From NCBI GenBank assembly GCA_965112735.1, contig OZ218951.1:4774001-4838000 (forward strand): 64,000 nucleotides of DNA. Reading direction: 5' to 3'. Both the position numbers and the translations under genes were made by a program. The notes under the pieces are model-generated. The model was not told the DNA's origin and searched no databases. It was given only the letters and a program-made list of their open reading frames with translations. Shown one piece after another: positions 3,317-38,782 of the stretch. Numbering within the stretch: the stretch's first letter is position 1; each line of letters starts with the position of its first letter. The stretch comes from Phaeosaccion multiseriatum (lineage: Eukaryota; Protista; Ochrophyta, other classes).

Positions 3317-4752
3317 TCATCCCATCTCCTCCGCCATGCTCTCCCATGTCTCGCTCTGCACCCCCCCGGGCCTCTCCAGCGGCAGGATTCCGCTCTCCTT
3401 GCCGAAGGTCGGATCCGTCCTTCGCATGAGGTCCAGCGCGGTTTGGGACCGGAAGAAGGCTGCTGCCGCCTCCATAAGTCGCTGCTCGATGCCGAGGCCG
3501 GGCTGACACCGCCGTGCCCCAGCCAAGGCCTTGTCCACCGAAGCACCGGCCGAGAGGAGCTGCCGCGCAGTCCCGTGCTGGTGTCTGCTGATGGCAGCAA
3601 GGAGAGGGGTGGCTCCGCTTGATGCCGTGATATCGATGAGGGATCCCGCAGAGATGAGACGAGCGACGACGGCCTCGTGCCCAAACTGCGCGGCGAGGTG
3701 GAGGGGTGCAACGCCCTTGTGGGTCCTTTTGTCCACACGTGCTCCCGCAGAGAGAAGCTTTCCCACCCCGGTGTCGTGTCCATGTTGAGAGGCAACGTGG
3801 AGAGGAGTGAAACCGTCGAGGTCAGCCTTGTCGATGCTGGCGTGGGCCCTGATGAGCTGCTGTACAACGCCCCCATAAGCGGAGTATTCCCTTGATTATC
3901 TGCGTTGTCCACATCCGCTTGGGCTGAGATGAGGTGCCTTATAACAGAGGTATGCCCGAAGTGAGAGGCAACATAAATCGGAGAAAAACCCTGCTCCTCC
4001 CTCAAGTCGGCATTAGCACGCGCCGAGAGCAGCCGCTGCACTATCGTGGATTGCCCCTCTTGCGATGCCGCGATCAAGGGAGTGACTCCTGTGGCATTCG
4101 CTTGGTCGACAGGTACTCCAATGTCCAACAGCCGCCTCACCACCTATCGTGTCCGTTGCTGCTCGCCAGTATAATCAATGGCGTGTGTCCAGAGGGTCCC
4201 CCTCTGGTGCTGAACGAGGCCCCTTCCCGCAGCAGCAGGTCCACGATATCCAACCGACCGTGTCGTGCACTCCCAAGTAATGCGACGTGTCCATTGTCAT
4301 CGATATGCTGATCCAAGCTCGCTTTGCCTTGTTTGGTGACAAGCTTCTTAACCAGCGCTCTCACAGTGGCAAAGCTGTCTCCTCTTTCCAGAGCCTGTCC
4401 GAGTCGCCGCGCCTGGTGTTGAGAGCAACACGTTCGGGGGAGACACGTACATTCATGGGATAAAAGGGATCAGCAGGCGGTTGCGCTTCGGAAGCGTCAG
4501 CTGAGCTTTCCACCCCAGCTATCGTATCCGCACCTCCTCCCTCATCTCGGCTTCCACCCCAGTTAACCTATCCGTAGCGCCCCCCCTTGCTTTGCTCTCT
4601 CCGAAACACAGAGGCTATCTTACTGTGCTTCAAAAGCGGGAGAGAGACGCATACACCGGATAAAAGGGGATAAGAGGAAGTGGATGAAGCACGAAGGATT
4701 CGCAGAGGAGGGGGCTAGGTCGTACCTCGGGTGTTAGTGCTGCCTGCTGCAC
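3317..4752 (-). pseudogene. Ankyrin-repeat pseudogene ANK2 (ANK5-8 subfamily)
   Basis: Exon 1 remnant VQQAALTPE|gtacgacc ends at 4726, with the CACCATG start deleted. Intron 4413..4725; exon 2 4412..3317. A 1-nt deletion near 4146 and a ~22-nt deletion near 3867 shift the frame. The C-terminus FFRSQTALDLMRRTDPTFGKES...EEMG is near-identical to ANK5-8. Confidence 0.85.
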
Positions 4753-5087
4753 CAGCAAGCGCTCCCCCCCATGAGGCGACGAGCTAACGAATGTAGAGGG
4801 ACGGCTTATACCCCCCTCCTCCATCCGCGAGCTAGGAAAAGAGAAAAGGAAGGAGGGAGAGAAGGAGGGGGACGCCTCGAACGCCGCCGGATCATCCCTC
4901 GGCTGCCATCCCTCAACTCTTCTGTGTAATCGGATCGTACTCGGGTAGCCGGAATGCAGCAATAATAGTAGTATAGGCGTTTACACCATTCGCAAGATGC
5001 TTCAGGGGATGGCAGGAGAAAAACAGGGCGGCGGCTGATGAGGGAAGGAGGGCAAGAGAAGTCTCACTCGTGGATCTTACGGCGCCC

Positions 5088-21180: not shown

Positions 21181-21670
21181 GTTTGGGAGAGAGAAAGAGA
21201 GGGGGAGAGGCAGGGGGGGAGGGGATGGACACAAGAGGAAAGGTGGTGGTCAGAGGTCAGGAGAAGGAGACTTCCCGTCAATGTTCTCATACAGACCCAA
21301 CATATTGTAAGCTTTCACACCTTGTGCTCGTCAGTTAGGAATAAGACAGGAGAAAAGAAGGGGAAGGGGAAATGAAATGGAGAGGAGAGGGGGGTCCTCC
21401 TCCTTGTATACGTGTGTTGGTTCTTCAGCTGGGGACATTTTTTATTTTTTCAATTTTTATTTTTTTGTTTTTTTTATTTGTTGTGTGTTTTTGTTTCCTC
21501 GGCCCCTCCACCACTAAATCAAAATACAAAGTTATCTCTCTCAATTTGGCCATCCCACGCTGACCTCTATTCTGCCCCAACACGACTCTGTGCAAGTCTA
21601 ACGAGTGCCATTCTCGTCCCCTTCCTTCCCAACGCCCTGGCCACACCGCAGGCGAGAGGTGCCCCTTTCA

Positions 21671-23502
21671 TCATGCCATCTCCTCCGCCACCTCCTGCAG
21701 CACCCCAGGGCTGACCTCTCTCTGCGACACCTTCAGCCTCCCTTCCTTGCCAAAGAGAAGGTCAGTGCCCCGCATCAGGTCCAACGCGCTCTGTGACGCA
21801 AAGTGATGCCTGTCCGCGGCAAGGAGGAATTCAACAGATGCTTCATCGCAATAACTTCGTGCCTGAGTCAGAGCCTTTGACAGTGAGGCCCCTCCCGAGA
21901 GCAGCTCCAGCGCCGCCCCGCTGTGGCCTTGTTGTGCCGCACAAAACAAGGGAGTCAAACCGATAGTGCTATCATTGTCAGGATCAGCCCCCGCAGACAG
22001 CAGCACACGGACCACTGCCTCATGGCACTCCCCAGCAGCCATGAGCAAAGCTGTCAACCCATGACCATCGAGCACCCCCACGTCAGCACCTCCTGAGATG
22101 AGCTCCTCCACGACATGAGCATGGCCCTGGGCACATGCAAAATGTATCGCTCCATACCCGTCGCCACTGATCGCATTCACGTCTGCCCCAGCCCTAAGCA
22201 GCTTCCGCACAATGCTTCTGTGCCCTTCCCTCGACGCTCCCATCAACGCACTTCTCCCCCCCTCGCCGTTAAGGCTGTCGAGGTCCGCGCCGGCAGCGAT
22301 GAGCTGATCCACCACAAGGCCGTGTCCATCTCCGCTTGCAGTATAGAGCGGAAACAATCCGCTGTGGCCTCCCAAATTCACATCTGCCCCGGAGGTAAGC
22401 AGCAGCTGTGTGACCCTGTGGTGTCCCATTTTTGCGGCAATGCACAAGGGGGTGCGGCCATCAAGATCCAAGTGGTTGGGATCAGCGCCGGCCGACAGCA
22501 GCTGCTGCACCGTCGCAAGATGTCCTTCCTGGGAGGCTGCGATCAAGGCCGTAAAACCTTCCGAATCTGTCTTATCGACCTCCGCGCCGGCTGACAGCAG
22601 CTGCTGCACCACCGCACGACGCCCTTCCTGGGAGGCATATATCAAGGCCGTAAAGCCTCCAGATGCTGTCTTGTCGACCTCCGCGCCGGCTGAGAGCAGC
22701 TGCTGCACCACTCTTTCATGTCCTCCATGTGAGACTCTATGGAGGGCTGTACTTCCCTTCATATTTGCCCAGTCCACCTCTGCACCCGCCGCTAGCAGCT
22801 GCCGCACCACTGCATAATGTCCTTCCTGGGACGCCAATATCAAGGCGGTTAAGCCTTCCGAACCTGCCTTGTCGACCTCCGCGCCGGCTGACAGCAGCTG
22901 CCCGACAACTCTTTCATGCCCTTTAAGTGAGGCTGAAATGAGGGCTGTACCCCCCGTCATATTTGCCCAGTCCACCTCTGCACCTGCCGACAGCAGCTGC
23001 TGCACCACCGCATCATTTCCTTCCCAGGAGGCCACCATGAGAGCCGTAGTTCCGTCTGTCGTTACTGCATTCACGTCCGCACCAGGAGAGAGAAGCAGTG
23101 GTACAACAGCAGCAGCATCCTTCACCACCTTACATGCCAACATTAGCGCAGTCAACCCGCGCACACGATTTGCAGCATTCGGCGACGCCCCCTCTTGCAG
23201 CAGAAGAGCTATGATGTCCACCCTCCCATTATGTATAGCTCCGGTCAGGGGAGAGTATCCGCTCTCATCGTAGGGCTCGTCCAAGCATGCCTTCCTCCCT
23301 CCGTTTTTAGCGACAAGGGCTCTTACCGCCGCTTCCACCTTTTTGACCCTCTGGCCACTTATGATGGCTTCCCGCAGAAGGGTGGCCTGCCACACGGAGC
23401 AAAGCAGCAGCGCGAGAAAAAGGAGGGGGGACATGAATGGACAGAGCGAGTGCTTCATCATGGGGGGGGGGGCTTTACCTCAGTGCTGAAGGCCCTTTGC
23501 AT
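21671..23502 (-). CDS. Ankyrin-repeat protein ANK3 (14 repeats), join(23502..23479, 23386..21671)
   Basis: Exon 1 encodes MQRAFSTE followed by gtaaag; the acceptor is gcag|GCC. Open exon 2 has 14 ankyrin repeats and the C-cap ADRHHFASQSALDLMRGTDLLFGKE...EEMA. Confidence 0.93.
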
Positions 23503-24345
23503 GGTACCGGTTGAGCAAAGCAGAAAGAGAGAGGCGCGGTAAGAGCAGCGGCACAGAGAGCTGTCTGACTGGGGCAGTGTAGTGGACTTGGGAGATGTGT
23601 GATGAGATGAAAAGGGAGAAAGTTGAAATATGTCAAGGGGAACCTGTAACAACTGTGCGACCATTTTCTGAACGCACTCTCTCGACTCTCGCGCTGTGCC
23701 CCTTCCTCCTTGACGCACGCACTCATGTATCAGCATCCGCGCGGAGAGGGTCCTGGACCGAGGTCTGATTCACTTTAATCGCGACACAGGGAGGGGAAAG
23801 GGGCATCTGCTGCCTTCACTTCATCATGGACACTCAAACTGTAATAAATTATTATATGCTCCACCACTTTCAGCGAGCCTCTGCCTTGGAAGCTCCGAGG
23901 AAACCTTCCTCCTCCTCTCCCCTGCCCTCGGTAGCCCCAACTTTGCTCATGCGGGGCGTTGGGGGCAGCACCCAGGGGGGCAGCATGGCATGCCTTGGAG
24001 GGGGGTCACAAGCAACGGAACCACAGAACAAAGGGGGGAAGGGTCTCTCCTTCGCCTCCACGTGTGTAACTCTTTCATTGGCGTTTATGGAAAAGCAAGG
24101 TCACCCCGCCACTTCCAAGGACACCCTGGGGGGAGAGGGGAGTTGCTCTCCCCTTGGTCCTCCTGCCTACCCCACTGCCCCTTCATGCTGACGCACCATT
24201 CCGCATGGGCATGCCCACTCCCTCAACACCCTCTCACTCAAACTCAAACAATTCTCATGCCAAGAGCCCCTTCCTTTTCGTCCTCGCCCTTAGCTAGGGC
24301 AACACCCGCCGTCCTTCCCACCGCAGGCGAGAGACGCCCCTTTCA

Positions 24346-26003
24346 TCATGCCATCTCCTCCGCCACCTCCTGCAGCACCTCAGGGCTAAGCTCTCTCTGC
24401 GACACCTTCAGCCTCCCTTCCTTGCCAAAGAGAAGGTCAGTGCCCCGCATCAGGTCCAGCGCGGTCTGTGACGCAAAGTGATGTCTGTCCGCGGCCAGAA
24501 GGAACTCGATCGCTGCTACATCGTTATCAGCTCGCGCTTGAGTCAGAGCCTTTCCCAGTGAGGCCCCTCCCGAGAGCAGCTCCAGCGCCGCCCCGCTGTG
24601 GCCTTGTTGTGCCGCACAAAACAAGGGCGTTCCAAGAGTGTGTTTGCCGCCATTGTCAGGATCAGCCCACGCAGACAGCAGCACACGGACCACTGCCTCA
24701 TGGCCCTTCCCAGCAGCCATGAGCAAAGCTGTTGAATCGTAAATAGCAGTAGCCAGCATCTCCACGTCGCCCCCTCCTGAGATGAGCTCCTCCACGACGC
24801 GAGCATGGCCGTCTGCAGCTGCCAAGTGTATCGCTCCATACCCGTCGCCACTGATCACATTCACCTCTGCCCCAGCCCTGAGCAGCTTCCGCACAATGCT
24901 TCTGTGCCCTCCCAAAGACGCTCCCATCAACGCACTTCTCCCCCTCTCACCACTACGGCTTTCGAGTTCCGCGCCGGCTGCGATGAGCTGCTCCACCACA
25001 AGGCCATGTCCATGATCGCTTGCAGCATTGAGCGGAAACCATCCGCTGTGGCCTCCCAAATTCACATCTGCCCCGGAGGTAAGCAGCAGCTGTGTGACCC
25101 TGTGGTGTCCCATTTCTGCGGCAATGCACAAGGGGGTGCGGCCATGAAGATCCAAGTGGTTGGGATCAGCGCCGGCCGACAGCAGCTGCTGCACCGTCGC
25201 AAGATGTCCATTGTGGGAGGCCATTAGCAACGCCGTATAGCCTTCGGACTCTGTCTTATCGACCTCCGCGCCGGCTGAGAGCAGCTGCTGCACCACCGCA
25301 CGATGCCCTTCCTGGGAGGCATATAACAAGGCCGTAAAGCCTCCAGATGCTGTCTTGTCGACCTCCGCGCCGGCTGAGAGCAGCTGCTGAACCACTCTTT
25401 CATGTCCTCTATGTGAGACTATATGGAGGGCTGTACATCCCTTCATATTTGCCAAGTCCACCTCTGCACCCGCCGACAGCAGCTGCTGCACCACCACCAC
25501 GGACCCTCGCCGGGAGGCCACCATGAGAGCCGTAGTTCCCTCTGTCATTACTGCATTCACGTCCGCACCAGCAGAGAGAAGCAGTGGTACAACAGCAGCA
25601 GCATCCTTCACCACCTTACATGCCAACATTAGCGCAGTCAACCCGCCCACACGATTTGCAGAATTCGGCGACGCCCCCTCTTGCAGCAGAAGAGCTATGA
25701 TGTCCACCCTCCCATTATGTATAGCTCCGGTCAGGGGACACCACCCTCTCTCATCGAAGGGCTCGTCCAAGCATGCCTTCCTCCCTCCGTTTTTAGCGAC
25801 GAGGGCTCTCACCGCCGCTTCCACCTTTTTTACCCTCTGGCCACTTATGATGGCCTCCCGCAGAAGGGTGGCCTGCCACAAGGAGCAGCAGCACGAGAGT
25901 AAGAGGGGGGGATGCATGGGCAGAGCGAGTGAGTGCGTCGTTCGAGTGGGGGGACAAGGGGGGGGGGGGGGGGCTTTACCTCAGTGCTGAAGGCCCTTTG
26001 CAT
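24346..26003 (-). CDS. Ankyrin-repeat protein ANK4 (12 repeats), join(26003..25980, 25872..24346)
   Basis: Exon 1 (MQRAFSTE) is identical to that of ANK3. It is a tandem paralogue with two fewer repeats and an open frame. Confidence 0.93.
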
Positions 26004-26538
26004 GGTACCGGTTGAACAAAGCAGAAAGAAAGAGGCGCGGTAAGAGCAGCGGCACAGAGAGCTGTCTGACTGGGGCAGTGTAGTAGTGGAGGGGAGGAGG
26101 GGAATGAAGAAGATTGGGTTGCCTAAAAGTAACGACTTAAACCGCCCCGGGGATTTAGGCTTCCAGGCGCGTCAGTCTCGGAAGCGAAGCAAAGGTACGC
26201 AGTGGATGCCAGCAAGTGGGGAGGGAAACTCGATATGTCAATGGGAACCTGTAGCAACCCTCGATCCCATTCTGGATCGATCGGCCGTCGAGGACGGGAG
26301 CCTCACCCGAGATACCGCCGAGCTGCACCTCCCTCTCTCCTGGGTTAACCTGCGCGCCCACCTCGGAAGCGGATCGACAGCGACATGAGGCCACCTTCGA
26401 CAACGGACTCGACTCGCCCAGGGCACAACGCACCCTCCAGAAGGTCCTCGCTCCACAACGACGCACCGCGTTTCAAGACTCGCTGGAGACGCTCCCCGAC
26501 GACGCGACAGCGGCTGACACCGGCATGGAGCCAGCAGA

Positions 26539-27142: not shown

Positions 27143-28591
27143 ATGCGTGCCCGAAGAAGCAGATGATGATTCACCTCCTTGACCCTGACCCTTGTGGTGC
27201 AGGCGGAGGTGGCGAGCGGGTGGAAGAGGACTCCCGATGGCCACCAGGGCATTAGCGGCTTCGTTCTCCGCGGGAGGCGTGGAGGATCGGAAGGGGCGGT
27301 GGCTGTCGCTGCGGTTGGGGTGGCCATCGCGAATCATGGTCATGGCTGGGTGGTGGGTCTGTTCCTTCTCCTCCTTCTCCTCCTGCTGCGGCTGCTGCTG
27401 CTGGCCAGTTGGTGCCTGCCGAATACCGGGGAGAGGCCAGTGAGTGAGGGAGGGGTGAGGAGGGGAGGGCGCGAGACACGAGCTTAGTAACAAGGAGTCG
27501 GGGGGGAAGGAGTGGGCGAGTGGAGCTCTCCCAAAGAGGAGGGGAGGCTGTAGCTAGCCGAAAGCAGGGGGCTCACAACTGGGCTCGCTCACGCACCCCC
27601 CACGCACTCGCCACCACTCACCTCAGCATTCGTGGTGCTCCACGGGGCCAGGCCCTCGGAATCGGTCCACGGCTTCTGGAACAGTAGAGCCGTGCCTGGG
27701 GACGGAGTGCTGATGCCCAGGTCCTGCAGGAGAATGGGGGAGAAGGTGAAGGGCTCCGCTGGCCTCGCGGAAGGGAGAGGAGTCCGTACAGCGGCTCCTG
27801 CTCCTGCTTCTCCTCCTCCTTCTCCTCCTGCTCCTCCTCCTGCTGGTGCTGCCGCAGATGCTGCTGGAGCTCCTGCTCCTCCGCCCCCCCCCTACTACTT
27901 CTCCTCCAGTGGGTGCTACTGCTGCCCCAGAGCCCTCCTTTTTCTGTGTCCCGCATCCTCTATTGACTCCTCCTTCTCCCTCGTCATTCTCGGATGTTCC
28001 CAGCGGCATCAAGACTTCGGGAGTCATGGTGCGAACGGGACTAGTGCGGAGGAGGGGCAAACTCTCTTGGTAGTCATCACAAAGGTGTCTTCCATTGCGG
28101 GCGATAGCCCCTTCACCCCCTGCCGGATGAGGAGCCGGGGCGCTCATGGGAGTCCGATTGAGGCTTGGCCGTGAAGCCGCGTGGATGGGAGACATGAAGG
28201 CCTGCATCTTCCCACCCCCAGCAAAAGAGGCGGAAGTGGCGAGCTGCGGAGATTTGGGGGGGAAAGGCAGAGGGATAGGCCGGTAAGGACCGCGGGTAGA
28301 AGCGGACATGATGGGAGGAGGGGCATTACCAGCCTCCAGCAAGTGTACGGAGCAAAGGACGCATTACCTTGCTTAGCCTTTCCTTATCTTTTGAGACTCG
28401 TGGGAGAATCTGGGTGGACCGGAGGAGAAACGTGGTGCAGCGGATGAGCCCATCACGCCCTGCAATAGCCGGGATGGAGAGGAAGCGGCAGGAGCAGCAG
28501 TAGGAGCCGCCGTCGCAGCAGCAGCCGCACGAATGGGCTCCAAAGGCGGGGCCTGGGATGTGTGCTGCTGTTCCTGCTTGCGCTTGACCAT
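27143..28591 (-). CDS. Hypothetical low-complexity protein (partial model; divergent from ANK5)
   Basis: Protein-like ORF pieces. The donor ...STTNAE|gtgagt at ~27620 joins in phase to the acceptor cggcag|APTGQQQQ at ~27415. There is a frameshift in the C-run at ~27885-27893 and an in-frame TAA at 28373-28375. No recognisable domain. Confidence 0.4.
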
Positions 28592-28947
28592 TCTTGCCGT
28601 TGCCCTGCTGAACTGACTGCGATCTTTCTGATCGTGTGTCGCGTAGCCCCTACACGTCCTTGGCTGCGTGTTGCGTGTGCTTCCTACGCCATCAGTGCTC
28701 TATGCTCCACGATTGTATCCTTCTCTTCCAAGGTTGAGAAGCTGAGGGGTCTCCTTCTAAAGATCGGGATCTGTGACTCTGGAGCATCAAGCCCCCCGAT
28801 GCCTTCAGAGGCCTCCAACAACCAAAAACGGGAGGGCCGTGACAGGCAGGGCGACTGACTACTGCACAGCAGGCACAGCAGCGAGAGAGCCTTCTGTAGG
28901 CCCCTTGTCAGCACTGCTCGTCTCAAGGGCGGAACCGCTTGCTCACC

Positions 28948-30456
28948 ATGGCGCAGCAGGCAGCTATAACGCCCGAGGTACGACCTAGCGCCCTCCTCTA
29001 CGACGGTGTTCTTCGGAAAGAATGGAGCAAAGAGAGGGGTTCTTGTGTGCGGATACGATAGCTGCGGTGGGAAGCTCACGTGTCGACGCAGAGGGCAGCG
29101 CTCTATTGATCCCTTTTTCCCCGGCGTTTGCGCCTCTCCCCCGCTTCCCAAGACAGTATACCAAGATGGACTCTGTGTTTCGGGGAGAGCAAAGCGAGGG
29201 GGGGCTTTGCGGATAGGATGGCGGCGGTGGGATGTTGGCGTATCGAAGCAGTGAGCAGCTTCCTGCTGATCCCTTTCATTCTATGTACGTGCGTGCGTCT
29301 CTCCTTCCCCACTTCGTTGCCCTCAACAACACCAGGCGCGGCGACTCGAAAAGGCCCTGGTCAGAGAAGGCAGCTTCCCCACGGTGAAAGCGCTGATTGG
29401 GAAGCTCATCGCCAAGCACGGCAAAGCAAGCTTGGATCAGCCCATCGACGACGAAGGATGTACCGCAGTGTTTAGGGCTGCAGTGCACGATCGGCTGGAT
29501 GTCTTAGACCTTCTCCTGCGGGAAGGAGCCTCCTTCAGCACCAGAGGGGGACCCTTTGGAGGCACGCCGTTGATAGCGGCTAGCAGCTGCGGACACGATC
29601 AGGTGGTGAGGCGGCTGTTGGACATGGGAGCCCCTGTCGACCAAGCGAATGCCACAGGACTTACTCCCGTGATATGGCGGCATCGGTAGAGGGGCACTCC
29701 ACGACAGTGCAGCAGCTGCTCTCGGCGCGTGCTAATGTCGACTTGGCGGAGGAACGCGGAGTTTCTCCGATTTGGATAGCCTCTCAGAACGGACATGGCT
29801 CTGTTGTAAGGCACCTCATCTCAGCCCAAGCGGATGTGAACCACGCAGAAAATCGCGGCGGTTATACTCCGCTTCAGCAGGCATCGATGAAAGGGCATGC
29901 GGGTATCGTACAACAGCTCATCAGGGCCCACGCCAGCATCGACAAGGCTGACTTCGAAGGTTTCACTCCTCTTCACCTTGCCTCTGAACATGGGCACGGC
30001 GCTGTGGTGGAGAAGCTTCTCTCTGCGGGAGCGCGTGTGGACAAACGGGCCAACAACGGCACAACACCTCTCTACCTTGCCGCGTATATTGGACACGAGG
30101 CCGTCGTCGCTCGTCTCATCTCTGCGGGATCCCCCATCGATGTCACGGCAACAAACGGTACCACCCCTCTCCTTGTTGCCATCAACAGACACCACCACGG
30201 GACTGCGCGGCAGCTCCTCTCGGCCGGTGCTTCGGTGGACAAGGCCTTGGCTGGGGCACGGCGGTGTCAGCTCGGCCTCGGCATCGAGCAGCGACTTATG
30301 GAGGCGGCAACAGCCTTCTTCCGATCCCAAACCGCGCTGGACCTCATGCGAAGGACGGATCCGACCTTCGGCAAGGAGAGTGGAATCCTGCCGCTGGAGA
30401 GGCCCTGGAGTGTGGGGAGCGAGACGTGGGAGAGCATGGCGGAGGAGATGGGCTGA
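28948..30456 (+). CDS. Ankyrin-repeat gene ANK5 (8 repeats), join(28948..28977, 29336..30456), with one 2-nt frameshift near 29672
   Basis: Exon 1 MAQQAAITPE|gtacgacc; acceptor acaccag|GCG. GTG AT ATG GCG shows an extra AT relative to the paralogues, so it is either a young pseudogene or a sequencing error. Confidence 0.85.
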
Positions 30457-31252
30457 GCGAGCAGCCAGGAGGGATGCGCGAGGTGGGGGCTGATGGGGCA
30501 ACGACGACTTTGGCAACGAAAGTGTATCGCTCCGGAATGCTCGCTTGCACCATTCATGCAGCCCAGCCATGCGAGTGAGCCTGTACATCAGGATGCAATG
30601 AGAGAGAGAGAGACTGCCCACGGCACACTGGCTTGGTGTTAGAAGGGTGAAGTGATTGCGATCCTCTGTCGCAGGGAGGAGCGAAGTATATGAGGTTGGG
30701 GGTCCGGGGGGGGGTAGGGGGGGAGGGGAGTCATGTGTGTAGCTTACGGGCAATGGGTGAAGAAGTGTATAGCTTGAGGGAGGAGGGAGAGGGAAGGTCA
30801 GTTCGTTTGAAGGGGGGAGAGTGTAATCCCGAGGGTCGAGGCCGAGGGCTTCCTTGGTGGGGCATGCGGGTACAGCAAGTAGTCGTAGCTTAGAGAAAGG
30901 CACTGCCCTGCTAAACACACAATGGTAAAGGTGAACGCCAGGTCGTTGTGTTCGTGTGGAAGCGGAAGGAAGGCACCGCTCATCTAGGCAGCAGCGGCGC
31001 GGTCGCGTCTGCGCGCACTCACACAGCCTTGCTGCCGCTGGCTTGCCCAAGGAACTCCCCCTCCTTGGATCGGGATCTGTGAATCGGATCACCAAACCCA
31101 ATGCCTGCTTCAGAGGCCTCATAGCTAAACTTTATCAGAGAGCGGGGAGGACGGTGATAGGCAGAGCCACTGATTCCTGCACAGCAGCAAGAGAGCCTTC
31201 TGTAGGCCTCTTGTCAGCACTACCGTCTCAAGCGCAAGGCCTCTTGCTCACC

Positions 31253-32756
31253 ATGGCGCAGCAGGCAACTTTAACGCCCGAGGTACGACCTAGCGCCCTC
31301 CTGTAGGACGTTGTTCTCGGAAAGAATGGAGCAAAGAGAGGGGTTCTTGTGCGGATACGATAGCTGCGGTGGGAAGCTCACGTATCGACGCAGAGGGAAG
31401 CTCTCTATTGATCCCTTTTTCTCCGGCGTATGTGCCTCTCCCCCGCTTCTCAAGACAGTACACTAAGATGGACTCTGTGTTTCGGGGAGAGCAAAGCGAG
31501 GGGGGGCTTTGCGGATACGATGGTGGCGGTGGGATGTTGGCGTATCGAAGCAGTGAGCAGCTTCCTATTGATCCCTATTATCCTATGTACGTACGTGCGT
31601 CTCTCCCCCCCGAACTCGTTTCCCTCAACAACACCAGGCGGGGCGGCTGGGGCAGGCTCTGAAGAGAGGAGACAGCTTCCCCACTGTGAAAGCGCTGATT
31701 GGGAAGCTCATCGCCAAACATGGCAAAGCAAGCTTGGATCAGCCCATCGACGAAGAAGGAAGTACCGCAATGCTTGAGGCTATACTGCACGATCGGCTGG
31801 ATGTCTTAGACCTGCTGCTGCGGGAAGAGGCCTCCTTCAGCACCAGAGGGGGCCCCTTTGGATACACGCCGTTGATAGCGGCTAGCAGCTGCGGACACGA
31901 TCAGGTGGTGAGGCGGCTGTTGGACATGGGAGCCCCTGTCGACCAGGCGGACGCCACAGCAGGAGCTACTCCCTTGATGGTAGCGTCGGAAAGGGGGCAC
32001 TCCACGACTGTGCAGCAGCTGCTCTCGGCGCGTGCTATTGTCGACTTGGCCGATAAGCGGGGTATCTCTGCGATTTGGATTGCCTCTCAGAACGGACATG
32101 GCTCTATTGTAAGGCACCTCATCTCAGCCCAAGCGGATGTGAACCACGCAAGTAATCAGGGGAGAACTCCGCTTCATCAGGCATCTGTTGAAGGGCATGC
32201 GGGAATTGTACAGCAGCTCATCAGGGCCCACGCCAGCATCGACAAGGCTGACCTCGAAGGTTTCACTCCTCTTCACCTTGCCTCTCAAGAGGGACACGAC
32301 GCCGTGGTGGAGAAGCTTCTCTCTGCGGGAGCGCGTGTGGACAAATGGGCCAACAACGGCACAACACCTCTCTACCTTGCCGCGCATTGTGGACACGAGG
32401 CCGTCGTCGCTCGTCTCATCTCTGCGGGATCCCCCATCGATATCACGGCATCAAACGGAGCAACCCCTCTCCTTGCTGCCATCAACAGACACCACCACTG
32501 GACTGCGCGGCAGCTCCTCTCGGCCGGTGCTTCGGTGGACAAGGCCTTGGCTGGGGCACGCCGGTGTCAGCTCGGCCTCGGCATCGAGCAGCGACTTATG
32601 GAGGCGGCAACAGCCTTCTTCCGGTCCCAAACCGCGCTGGACCTCATGCGAAGGACGGATCCGACCTTCGGCAAGGAGAGCGGAATCCTGCCGCTGGAGA
32701 GGCCCTGGAGTGTGGGGAGCGAGACGTGGGAGAGCATGGCGGAGGAGATGGGCTGA
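31253..32756 (+). CDS. Ankyrin-repeat protein ANK6 (8 repeats), join(31253..31282, 31638..32756), intact
   Basis: Exon 1 MAQQATLTPE|gtacgacc, a phase-0 intron, and an open exon 2 ending ...SETWESMAEEMG*. Confidence 0.93.
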
Positions 32757-33538
32757 GCGAGCAGCCAGGAGGGATGCGCGAGGTGGGGGCTGATGGGGCA
32801 ACGACGACTTTGGCAACGAAAGTGTATCGCTCCAGAATGCTCGCTTGCACCATTCATGCAGCCCAGGCATGCGAGTGAGCCTGTGCATCAGAATGCGATG
32901 CGAAAGAGAGACTGCCCATGGCACACTGGCTTGGTGTTAGTAGGGTGAAGTGATTGCGATCCTCTGTCGCAGAGAGGAGCGGAGCACAGGAGGGAGGGGG
33001 TCCGGGGGGGGGGAGGGGAGTCATGTGTGTATCGTAGCTTATAGCTTGAGGGAGGGGGGAGAGGGAAGGTCAGTTCGTTTGAAGGGGGGAGAGTGTAGTC
33101 CCGATGGGTCGAGGCCGAGGGCTTCCTTGGTGGGGCATGAAGATACAGCAAGTAGTCGTAGCTTAGAGAAAGTACTGCCCTGCTAAACACACAATGGTAA
33201 AGGTGAACGTCAGGTCGTTGTGCTCGTGTGGAGGCGGAAGGAAGGCACCGCTCATCTAGGCAGCAGCGGCGCGGGCGCGTCTGTGCGTACTTAAACTCAA
33301 CACGGCCTTGCTGCCGCTGCCTTTCACCCAACAAGGAACTCCGCCCTCCTTGGATCGGGATCTGTGAATCCGATCACCAAACCCAATGCCTGCTTCAGAG
33401 GCCTTTATAGCTAAACTTTATCAAAGAGCGGGGAGGCCAGCGATAGGCAGAGCCACCGACAGCTGCACAGCAGCGAGAGAGCCTTCTGTAGGCCTCTTGT
33501 CAGCACTACCGTCTCAAGCGTAAGGCCGCTTGCTCACC

Positions 33539-34090
33539 ATGATGGCGCAGCAGGCAACTCATCAGGGCCCACGCCAACGTCGACAAGACTAGCCTGGAAG
33601 GTTTCACTCCTCTTCACCTTGCCTCTCAAGAGGGACACGACGCCGTGGTGGAGAAGCTTCTCTCTGCAGGAGCACGTGTGCACAAAGGGACCAACAAGGG
33701 CGCAACACCTCTCCACCTTGCCGCGCAGGATGCCGTCGTCGCTCGTCTCATCTCTGCGGGGATCCCCCATCGATGTCACGACAACACACGGTACCACCCC
33801 TCTCGTTGTTGCCATCAACAAAGACCACCACGGGACTGCGCGGCAGCTCCTCTTGGCCGGTGCTTCGGTGGACAAGGCCTTGGCTGGGGCACGGCGGTGT
33901 CAGCTCGGCCTCGACATCGAGCAGCGACTTCTTGAGGCGGCAGCAGCCTTCTTCCGGTCCCAAACCGCGCTGGACCTCATGCGAAGGACGGATCCGACCT
34001 TCGGCAAGGAGAGCGGAATCCTGCCGCTGGAGAGGCCTGGCGGGGTGCAGAGCGAGACGTGGGAGAGCATGGCGGAGGAGTTGGGCTGGG
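33539..34090 (+). pseudogene. Ankyrin pseudogene ANK7 with ~950-bp internal deletion
   Basis: Exon 1 ATG ATG GCG CAG CAG GCA ACT is fused directly and out of frame to catcagggcccacgcc (repeat 5 of exon 2), with TAG soon after. There is a further in-frame deletion removing GHE, a 1-nt insertion at ~33760, and loss of the normal stop. Confidence 0.9.
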
Positions 34091-34748
34091 CGAGCAGCAG
34101 GGATGCGGGAGGTGGGGGCTGGTCGTGCAACGACGACTTCGGCAACGAACGAGTACCGCTCCAGCTCGCTCGCTTGCACCAATCATGCAGCCCTTGCGAG
34201 TGAGCCTTACATCAGGATGCGATGCGAGAGAGAGACTGCCCATGGTACACTGGTTTGGTGCAGGAGCGATGAAGTGGTTGCGATCCTCTGTCGCAGAGAG
34301 GGGCGGAGTACAGGAGGTAGGGGGTCCGGGGGAGTAGGGGAGTCACGTGTTTAGCTTATGGGATCAATGGGTGAAGTGTATAGCTTGAGGGGGGTGGGGA
34401 GGGAAGGTCAGTTCGTTTGAAGGGGGGAGAGTGTAATGCCGATAGACGGCGAGGGGTCCCTGGGGCTGTGCTCGTGTGGAGGCAGAAGGCAGGCTAACTC
34501 TCATCTAGGCAGCAACTGCGTCTGTACGCACTCAAGACTGCCCTCTCGCCCACGCGTAACGGAACTCCACCCCCCTGGGATCAGGATCTGTGAATCGGAT
34601 CACCAAACCCAAAAAATGCCTTCAGAGGCCTCCATGATTTCAAACTGATCAGAGAGCGGGGAGGAGCCAGTGACTACTGCAGCGAGAGGGCATTTGGCAG
34701 CCCCTTTGTCAGCACTGCTCGTCTCAAGGGCGGGGCCGCTTGCTCACC

Positions 34749-36305
34749 ATGGCGCAGCAGGCAAATCTAACGCCCGAGGTACGACCCAGCGTCCTCCTGT
34801 AGGACGGTGTTCTTCGGAAAGAATGGAGCAAAGAGAGGGGTTCTTGTGCGGATAGATAGCTGCGGTGGGTTCTCACGTATCAACGCAGAGGGAAGCTCTC
34901 TATTGATCCCTTTTTCTCCGGCGTATGTGCCTCTCCCCCGCTTCTCAAGACAGCACACTAAGATGGGGGGGGAGAGGAAAGCGAGGGGGGGCTTTGCGGA
35001 TACGATGGCCGCGGTGGGATGTTGGCGTATCGAAGCAGCGAGCACCTTCCTGTTGATCTCTATTATCCTATGTACGTGCGTGCTTCTCTCCCCCCCGAAC
35101 TCGTTTCCCTGCCTCAACAAAACCAGGCGGGGCGGCTGGGGCAGGCTCTGAAGAGAGGAAACAGCCTCTCCATTGTGAAAGCGCTGATTGGGAAGCTCAT
35201 CGCCAAGCATGGCAAAGCAAGCTTGGATCAGCCTATCGACAAAGACGGATGTACCGTAATGCTTGTGGCGGCACTGCACGGCCGGTTGGATATCGTGGAC
35301 CTTCTGCTGCGGGAAGGGGCCTCCTTCAGCACCAGAGGGGGACCCTATGGATACACGCCATTGATGGCGGCTAGCGGATACGATGAGGTGGTGAGGCGGC
35401 TGTTGGACAGTGGAGCACCTGTCGACCAAGCGAATACCAGAGGAGCTACTCCCTTGTTTGTAGCATCGCAAGAGGGGTACTCCACGACTGTGAAGCAGCT
35501 GCTCTCGGCGCGTGCTAATGTCAACTTGGCAAACGAACGCGGAGTTTCTCCGATTTGGATGGCCTCTCACAACGGACATGGCTCTGTTGTAAGGCACCTC
35601 ATCTCAGCCCAAGCGGATGTAAACCACGCAAGTAATCGCGGTTATACTCCGCTTCGGGAGGCATCGCTCAATGGGCATGCGGGCATCGTACAGCAGCTCA
35701 TCAGGGCCCACGCCAGCATCGACAAGGCTGACATCGAAGGCTTCACTCCTCTTCACCTTGCCTCTCAACAAGGACACGACGCCGTGGTGGAGAAGCTTCT
35801 CTCTGCGGGAGCACATGTGGACAAAAGGACCAACAAGGGCTCAACACCTCTCCACCTTGCCGCGCAGGATGCTGGGCACGAGGCAATCGTTGCTCGTCTC
35901 ATCTCTGCGGGATCCCCCATCGATGTCCCAAGATCAGACGGTGCCACCCCTCTCTTTGGTGCCATCTGCGGAGGCCACCACGGGACTGCGCGGCAGCTCC
36001 TCTCGGCCGGTGCTTCGGTGGACAAGGCCTTGGCTTGGGCGCCGCGGTGTCCGCTCGGCCTCGGCATCGACGCGGTGGCTTGGGTGCCGGGGTGTACACT
36101 CGGCCTCGGCATCGGCGCGGTGTCCGCTCGGCCTCGGCAGCGACTTCTGGAGGCGGCAGCAGCCTTCTTCCGGTCTCAAACGGCGCTGGATCTCATGCGA
36201 AGGACGGATCCGACCTTCGGCAAGGAGAGCGGAATCCTGCCGCTGGAGAGGCCCTGGAGTGTGGGGAGCGAGACGTGGGAGAGCGTAGCGGAGGAGATGG
36301 GCTGA
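34749..36305 (+). CDS. Ankyrin-repeat protein ANK8 (8 repeats), join(34749..34778, 35127..36305), intact, with duplication in the C-cap
   Basis: Exon 1 MAQQANLTPE|gtacgacc and an open exon 2. An internal tandem duplication at ~36030..36137 stays in frame. Confidence 0.92.

Positions 36306-36774: not shown

Positions 36775-38782
<2,008 letters not shown>

Follow-up and report, generated by a model that had tools for sequence, protein, structure and literature searches.

Interlocus gene conversion with partial concerted evolution is a familiar feature of tandem and inverted multigene families, the arm-to-arm conversion of palindromes being one example. Ohta's models reportedly combine conversion with diversifying selection. 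Plant NLR and R-gene clusters contain chimeric 'type I' genes. Homogenising and diversifying conversion have been reviewed together by Kurosawa and Ohta (PMC3924843). In fungal NLRs the exchange of repeats, subject to positive selection, diversifies the WD, ANK and TPR repeat domains (Dyrka et al. 2014, PMC4986451), and in Ectocarpus the LRR and TPR repeats of candidate immune receptors are exon-shuffled (Zambounis et al. 2012, PMC3341825; ROCO follow-up, PMC11378527). Here we describe a family of two-exon ankyrin genes (ANK) in Phaeosaccion multiseriatum, on which our literature search found no paper. We focus on a 64,000-nucleotide stretch of contig OZ218951.1 (C2:4774001-4838000), called the window below; coordinates without a contig name are window positions.

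The window copies are mosaics. We put at roughly 85% the probability that they are patchworks made by in-register non-allelic homologous recombination, mostly short-tract gene conversion, in a family of at least 50 copies under diversifying selection. The finding falls in the known category of interlocus (ectopic) gene conversion; the gene family and the organism are new, the mechanism is not. Segment-wise incongruent trees, short two-ended tracts, the involvement of silent and non-coding sites, chromosome-specific clades and exchange between inverted arms are all shared with described cases, and nothing essential differs.

We located copies with tblastn and blastn, using an intact copy as query. 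The genome comprises 67 Mb in 22 contigs (59% GC), and a whole-genome search returned at least 53 DNA matches (145 candidates) on C1, C2, C7, C9 and C15. The copies stand in tandem arrays on several chromosomes, about 30 of them in the C15 array, and the tail word has 35 exact occurrences genome-wide. Our analysis set consisted of 30 loci (L001-L030) plus ANK2 and ANK7, and about 20 or more family members lie outside it. Each family unit spans about 2.15 kb, made up of about 150 bp of conserved upstream sequence, a 30-nucleotide exon 1, a variable intron, a 1.12-kb exon 2 and about 480 bp of conserved 3' flank. The two-exon model of the initial annotation held, with exon 1 of 30 nucleotides ending in GAG before GTACGA, an intron of about 350-380 nucleotides and an acceptor CAG followed by GCG. 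The upstream block, exon 1, the splice sites and the intron are conserved family-wide. Exon 2, which alone served (by reference) as protein query, encodes an N-cap, eight ankyrin repeats of 33 amino acids and a 66-amino-acid tail with the C terminus SETWESMAEEMG. Pfam matches on exon 2 are to Ank families only.

Two of the five window copies (c2 and c5 to c8) are intact: ANK6 (31254-32756, plus strand; exon 1 31254-31283, exon 2 31638-32756) and ANK8 (34750-36305, plus strand; exon 2 35127-36305). The other three are broken. ANK5 (28949-30456, plus strand; exon 1 28949-28978, exon 2 29336-30456) has a 2-nucleotide insertion at 29672-29673 as its sole lesion. ANK7 (33543-34090, plus strand) is a dead remnant in which a deletion of about 0.94 kb joins repeat 5 to exon 1 in the wrong frame; it carries more small indels and has lost its stop codon. 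ANK2 (3317-4754, minus strand) is an old decayed pseudogene on a long private branch, with a 1-nucleotide deletion near 4146 and a 22-nucleotide deletion near 3877.

The plus-strand ANK5-ANK8 array faces a second array at a distance of 30-52 kb. The latter consists of four intact minus-strand copies, L002, L003, L004 and L006 (C2:4840740-4856906), which lie 2.7-19 kb beyond the end of the window. ANK5 is the outermost member of the plus-strand array, and the ANK5 and L006 loci are collinear for 3.7 kb, including a 1.5-kb flank found in no other copy. Because these two outermost copies share a unique flank, the two arrays are arms of an old inverted duplication, with ANK5 and L006 as arm partners. 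The two arms do not simply mirror each other in copy order. No further inverted repeats were found in the 28-kb portion of the spacer that lies within the window. The whole-gene maximum-likelihood (ML) tree consists of chromosome-specific clades and places ANK2 on a long basal branch of the C2 clade. Within that clade the sister pairs join the two arrays: ANK5 with L006 (100% bootstrap), ANK6 with L002, and ANK8 with L004 (91%).

No single tree accounts for the whole gene. The initial annotation had reported that the nearest relative changes along the gene, and this is borne out: in the quartet ANK2/5/6/8, 65 informative sites split 32/22/11 over the three possible groupings and are spatially clustered in blocks. 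The pairwise homoplasy index (PHI) test rejects a single history for the window copies alone (p = 0.001). With 2000 permutations it gave z = -15.6 for the C2 clade, -14.4 for C15 and -9.6 for C9, all at the permutation floor (p <= 0.0005). When only purely synonymous codons of the C2 clade were used, the signal persisted (z = -3.4, p = 0.0008). Since it survives at silent sites, convergence at selected residues is not its cause. Clustered fast-evolving sites would shift PHI in the opposite direction, toward more incompatibility between neighbors.

Further tests agreed. A Sawyer-type run test of concordant polymorphic sites found 9-10 globally significant pair fragments of 60-430 columns in the C2 clade. 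A parsimony breakpoint search over all 945 topologies, using dynamic programming, reduced tree length from 287 steps on a single tree to 244 with three breakpoints, a saving of 43, and the best of 200 site-order permutations reached 270 steps (at most 17 saved). The four segments obtained in this way have ML trees that contradict one another, with bootstrap values of 84-100%. In the approximately unbiased (AU) test each segment rejected the topologies of the others, the only tolerated alternative being the whole-gene tree on segment B. Globally significant fragments were found in 27 of 163 pairs within clusters versus 12 of 302 between clusters. We considered inter-chromosomal conversion for the latter 12 and rejected it, as all of them lie between the last repeat and the end of the tail (alignment columns 1395-1725), where constraint fits better.

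The mosaic is visible in short motifs. All five contrasts listed in the initial annotation are present in the sequence: ARRL in ANK2 and ANK5 versus AGRL in ANK6 and ANK8; GRLDIVD in ANK2 and ANK8 versus DRLDVLD in ANK5 and ANK6; T(N/H)KG..PLHLAA in ANK2, ANK7 and ANK8 versus ANNGTTPLYLAA in ANK5 and ANK6; VT.T.GTTPL.VAIN in ANK5 and ANK7 versus ITAS.GATPLLAAI in ANK2 and ANK6; and ERPGGVQSET in ANK2 and ANK7 versus ERPWSVGSET in ANK5, ANK6 and ANK8. We set their polarity with 23 outgroup copies from C9, C15 and C7. ARRL and ERPWSVGSET proved to be ancestral states, and their sharing is therefore uninformative about exchange. The derived states are AGRL (ANK6, ANK8, L003 and L004), DRLDVLD, LDIVD and GGVQ. 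LDIVD involves three nucleotide changes within 12 bp common to ANK2 and ANK8, and GGVQ involves five changes within 8 bp common to ANK2 and ANK7. The direction of transfer is unreadable in both patches. The GGVQ variant of the tail (WSVG to GGVQ) occurs at four genomic places, namely ANK7 34039-34051, ANK2 3348-3364, C2:2127187 and C2:2232730, and the standard tail form occurs 35 times. The last two GGVQ copies are 2.6 Mb away, which shows that the variant extends beyond ANK2 and ANK7. A single complex mutation with later copying seems to be its source.

Individual tracts can be delimited against diverged flanks. Over 28527-29514, a stretch that covers the promoter, exon 1, the intron and the start of exon 2, ANK5 and L006 show 4-5 differences in about 990 bp (about 0.5%), with 2 mismatches in about 600 bp over 28949-29483. 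Compared base by base, the two loci are about 5% diverged in their shared flank (27454-28553) and 10-20% diverged downstream of the tract. The L006 copy of this tract is 52 kb distant and in opposite orientation. From this pattern of divergence, the tract reads as a recent arm-to-arm conversion within the older duplication. Immediately downstream, ANK5 is identical to L003 over 142 bp (29484-29625, plus strand; 0 mismatches). L003 is an intact copy 44 kb away in the inverted array, and the flanks of this tract carry 25 mismatches in 157 positions on the 5' side and more than 20 in 158 on the 3' side, or about 15% (Fisher p ~2e-8, with a conservative flank count). Beyond 29625, ANK5 continues with about 290 bp that have no close relative (29626-29910), becomes ANK6-like and is lastly ANK7-like.

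The other array members change relatives in the same way. The nearest relative of ANK6 is in turn L004 (31638-31785), L003/L002 (31928-32080), L006 (32208-32332, with 0 mismatches in 125) and L002. ANK7 passes from an ANK8/L006-like segment to an ANK5-like one (33738-33920) and then to the ANK2-type GGVQ tail. ANK8 is L004-like in several segments, including 35809-35888. Tracts range from about 60 to about 1000 bp, and they are of varied age, with 0, 1-2, 5 or 7 mismatches.

Exchange is strictly in register. For every repeat unit examined (250 of 250), the closest relative is the corresponding repeat of another gene, and DNA identity between differing repeat positions is 36-55%. The exchange is therefore from paralogue to paralogue and not a module-wise shuffling of repeats. 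The initial annotation had proposed that gene conversion shuffles repeat-sized segments; recombination between paralogues stands, but the repeat size is only loosely borne out, and tract ends are unlinked to repeat boundaries. The impression of repeat-sized units arises because informative sites cluster once per repeat. They gather at repeat positions 2, 6-7 and 10-11 and at the last three residues, which are the classical ankyrin binding face. At binding-face codons, whose phases were set beforehand, the ratio of nonsynonymous to synonymous substitution rates (dN/dS) is 1.26-2.23, versus 0.42-0.75 at scaffold codons. These data indicate that exchange reassorts blocks of predicted binding-face residues and that the scaffold and the tail stay uniform.

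This arrangement can be set against the repeat-protein systems introduced above. As in plant and fungal NLRs, the ANK binding surfaces have dN/dS > 1 at predicted contacts, and exchange between clustered paralogues yields new combinations. Unlike NLRs, the ANK family lacks NB-ARC and NACHT domains by Pfam search of exon 2 and consists of ankyrin repeats plus an orphan tail. Fungal NLRs have near-identical repeats that are shuffled out of register, whereas the ANK repeats are well diverged from one another within a gene and keep their register. With Ectocarpus the family shares its large size, its reassorted modules and its signs of diversifying selection. In Ectocarpus, however, each exon holds one repeat and shuffling is exon-wise, whereas the eight ANK repeats sit in one exon and are subject to homologous conversion between paralogues.

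The tail and the 3' flank differ from the repeats in their conservation. The 66-amino-acid tail (32560-32756 in ANK6, and its equivalents) is 95-99% identical in DNA between chromosomal clades, the scaffold 80-90% and the intron 60-88%. Silent sites in the tail are near-fixed (dS 0.02-0.08). The tail had no Pfam match, and a word search of a protein set of 5.8 billion clusters gave no hit. We had considered that the 3' flank outconserves the coding region and dropped this idea, as the flank is 82-89% identical between clades, like the scaffold, and the tail alone reaches 95-99%. A G-quadruplex (G4)-type motif with at least four G-runs lies on the gene strand 232-241 nucleotides past the stop codon in 28 of the 30 loci L001-L030. 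In the window it is found at 30697-30727 and about 32990-33020, and a second motif often follows about 305 nucleotides after the stop. The motif belongs to the conserved 3' flank of about 480 bp, and its position beside each gene invites comparison with the G4 of Neisseria pilE. It may be an element of the untranslated region or a recombination-prone site.

Mosaicism, the tracts, the in-register rule and the signal at silent and non-coding sites are observed; from them we infer gene conversion as the molecular mechanism. In this mechanism, recombination between paralogues, always in register, would copy stretches of about 60-1000 bp from gene to gene. Exchange partners would be copies of one array or of the opposing inverted arms, and copies on different chromosomes more rarely or not at all. 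Some unequal exchange would accompany interlocus conversion. Each gene would become a patchwork in which binding-face blocks are reassorted.

Several points weigh against this interpretation. With a single genome, conversion is indistinguishable from double crossover and from a crossover combined with inversion between the inverted arms. The AU p-values are optimistic, since the breakpoints were picked from the data, and the permutation test is the unbiased one. Two of the cleanest tracts (142 and 125 bp) are about as long as a short read and the mosaics are read from the assembly, so that chimeras are possible. The family set is partial, with 30 of at least 50 loci read, and orphan segments such as 29626-29910 of ANK5 may have unseen donors. 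That reassortment is useful to the organism is also something we infer.

Reciprocal exchange is the alternative that fares best. Unequal crossovers in the tandem arrays, together with inter-arm crossovers that flip the 30-kb spacer, could be the main cause of the mosaics in place of non-reciprocal conversion. Copy number and repeat number do vary in the family, with some copies elsewhere having about three extra repeats (split overlapping matches), the more distant genes ANK3 and ANK4 differ in length, and the arms are not mirror images. However, many patches are short and internal, with other ancestry on both sides; each would need two exchanges per event, which is the signature of conversion, and exchange between inverted copies without conversion would need repeated inversions. 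We consider it unlikely that crossovers are the main cause. The initial annotation had argued that the distance and inversion of ANK2, which indeed lies 24 kb upstream in inverted orientation, rule out simple unequal crossover. The argument is sound but incomplete, because the main exchange partners are in the inverted array past the window end.

A more ambitious reading holds that the facing arrays are a maintained diversification device. Frequent in-register conversion between the arms, perhaps aided by the G4-type motif, would keep recombining binding-face modules within a DARPin-like recognition repertoire, and copies broken only recently, such as ANK5 and ANK7, would go on supplying sequence to functional genes; in its extreme version the process would be somatic. 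We regard this as quite improbable. We also give little weight to the idea that the mosaics are assembly or polishing chimeras, formed from collapsed or cross-polished paralogues in a repetitive region. Nothing direct favors it, beyond the short-read length of the two perfect tracts and the difficulty that arrayed copies of 85-96% identity pose for assemblers. On the other side, 67 Mb in 22 contigs implies a long-read assembly whose reads would span several units of 2.3 kb, and the same signal appears independently in arrays on three contigs. The range of tract ages and the 4-5 differences kept in the 1-kb ANK5/L006 tract also count against chimeras.

The initial annotation had suggested that broken copies could act as a sequence reservoir. 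In its full form this would be programmed, pseudogene-templated diversification of the kind known for trypanosome variant surface glycoproteins (VSG), chicken immunoglobulins (Ig) and Neisseria pilE/pilS, with broken copies as a silent archive for an expressed gene. The likenesses are segmental copying, a variable region between constant 5' and 3' blocks, the presence of broken copies (three of five in the window) that nevertheless share tracts with others, and the G4-type motif after the stop. However, broken copies are a minority (6 of the 32 studied), the other 26 have an intact exon 2 and appear self-sufficient, and the conservation of the upstream block, exon 1 and intron from copy to copy leaves no single expression site apparent. 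Unlike in those systems, we found no pseudogene directionality in the single tract of readable polarity.

In the broken copies themselves we saw no pointer to directional use of the VSG kind. Over the gene, ANK2 is at most 82% identical to any relative genome-wide and so is largely out of the exchange pool. We considered it as an active exchange partner and rejected this, as its fragments are not globally significant in the C2 clade (best p = 0.08). The only tract whose polarity can be read appears to run from an intact gene to a pseudogene: the sequence of 29484-29625 belongs, with the L003 flanks, to the ANK6/L002/L003 lineage and is foreign to the ANK5/L006 lineage, which makes intact L003 the likely donor and ANK5 the likely recipient. 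This event may be older than the ANK5 frameshift. Dead copies do participate in exchange, as the ANK5-like and ANK2-type segments of ANK7 show. Lesions have not spread among the copies studied, except for one 2-nucleotide insertion, present at an identical site in copies of different background. We conclude that the pseudogenes are ordinary array members, at least as recipients, and form no dedicated archive. The reservoir claim thus finds no support, and programmed diversification is very doubtful.

The recurrent insertion is an AT duplication found in ANK5 (29672-29673) and in the same alignment columns of L018 (C9:1804k), just past the repeat-3 TPL codons. The backgrounds of the two copies otherwise differ. 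It may stem from repeated slippage or from the transfer of a very short patch.

The least probable account, an absence of recombination in which retained ancestral states and convergent changes at a small number of hypervariable binding-face positions subject to diversifying selection produce the pattern, can point to the ancestral ARRL and ERPWSVGSET, to the recurrence of ITAS.GATPLLAAI and T.KG..PLH in C15 and C9 copies, to binding-face dN/dS > 1 and to the much homoplasy left inside segments after partitioning, but it is largely refuted by the synonymous-site signal, the direction of the PHI shift, the extension of the ANK5/L006 tract over non-coding promoter and intron, the mismatch-free stretches of 125-142 bp between flanks about 15% diverged, and site-order permutations that never came near the observed breakpoint gain.

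Other features of the window and the family concern related forms of change. ANK1, ANK3 and ANK4 in the window are distant ankyrin genes with about 40% protein identity to the ANK family copies. ANK3 and ANK4 (21644-26084, minus strand) encode 596 and 523 amino acids, are 88-90% identical to each other and differ in internal repeat number, with offset self-matches at 22575-22836 and 22773-23034. Their length change is an out-of-register exchange within a different subfamily. In ANK8 an additional in-frame block at 36071-36136 stands where the ankyrin region meets the tail; its appearance suggests that a motif of about 30 nucleotides (GCGGTGTC.GCTCGGCCTCGGCATCG) was re-duplicated locally in tandem. 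Right behind the array (37560-37700), the spacer contains low-complexity tracts, among them a long (CA)n/(TG)n microsatellite. Elsewhere in the genome, split and overlapping matches to ANK6 (1-1016 and 686-1507) occur at C15:2383159-2384943, C15:2423443-2425230, C15:2344165-2345939, C15:2483484-2485256 and C2:2020112-2024885. Such matches imply family members predicted to have about three additional ankyrin repeats. Runs of a 204-bp sub-repeat are found at C2:2.02 Mb.

These results provide a clean, quantified case in which gene conversion and diversifying selection act jointly on a natural repertoire of ankyrin 'binders' in a microbial eukaryote, with binding-face blocks recombined even between inverted arrays that lie 30-52 kb from each other. 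Recombination must be allowed for in gene trees and in dN/dS site models of the ANK family. The findings bear on the way in which this genome's numerous ankyrin arrays generate variety.

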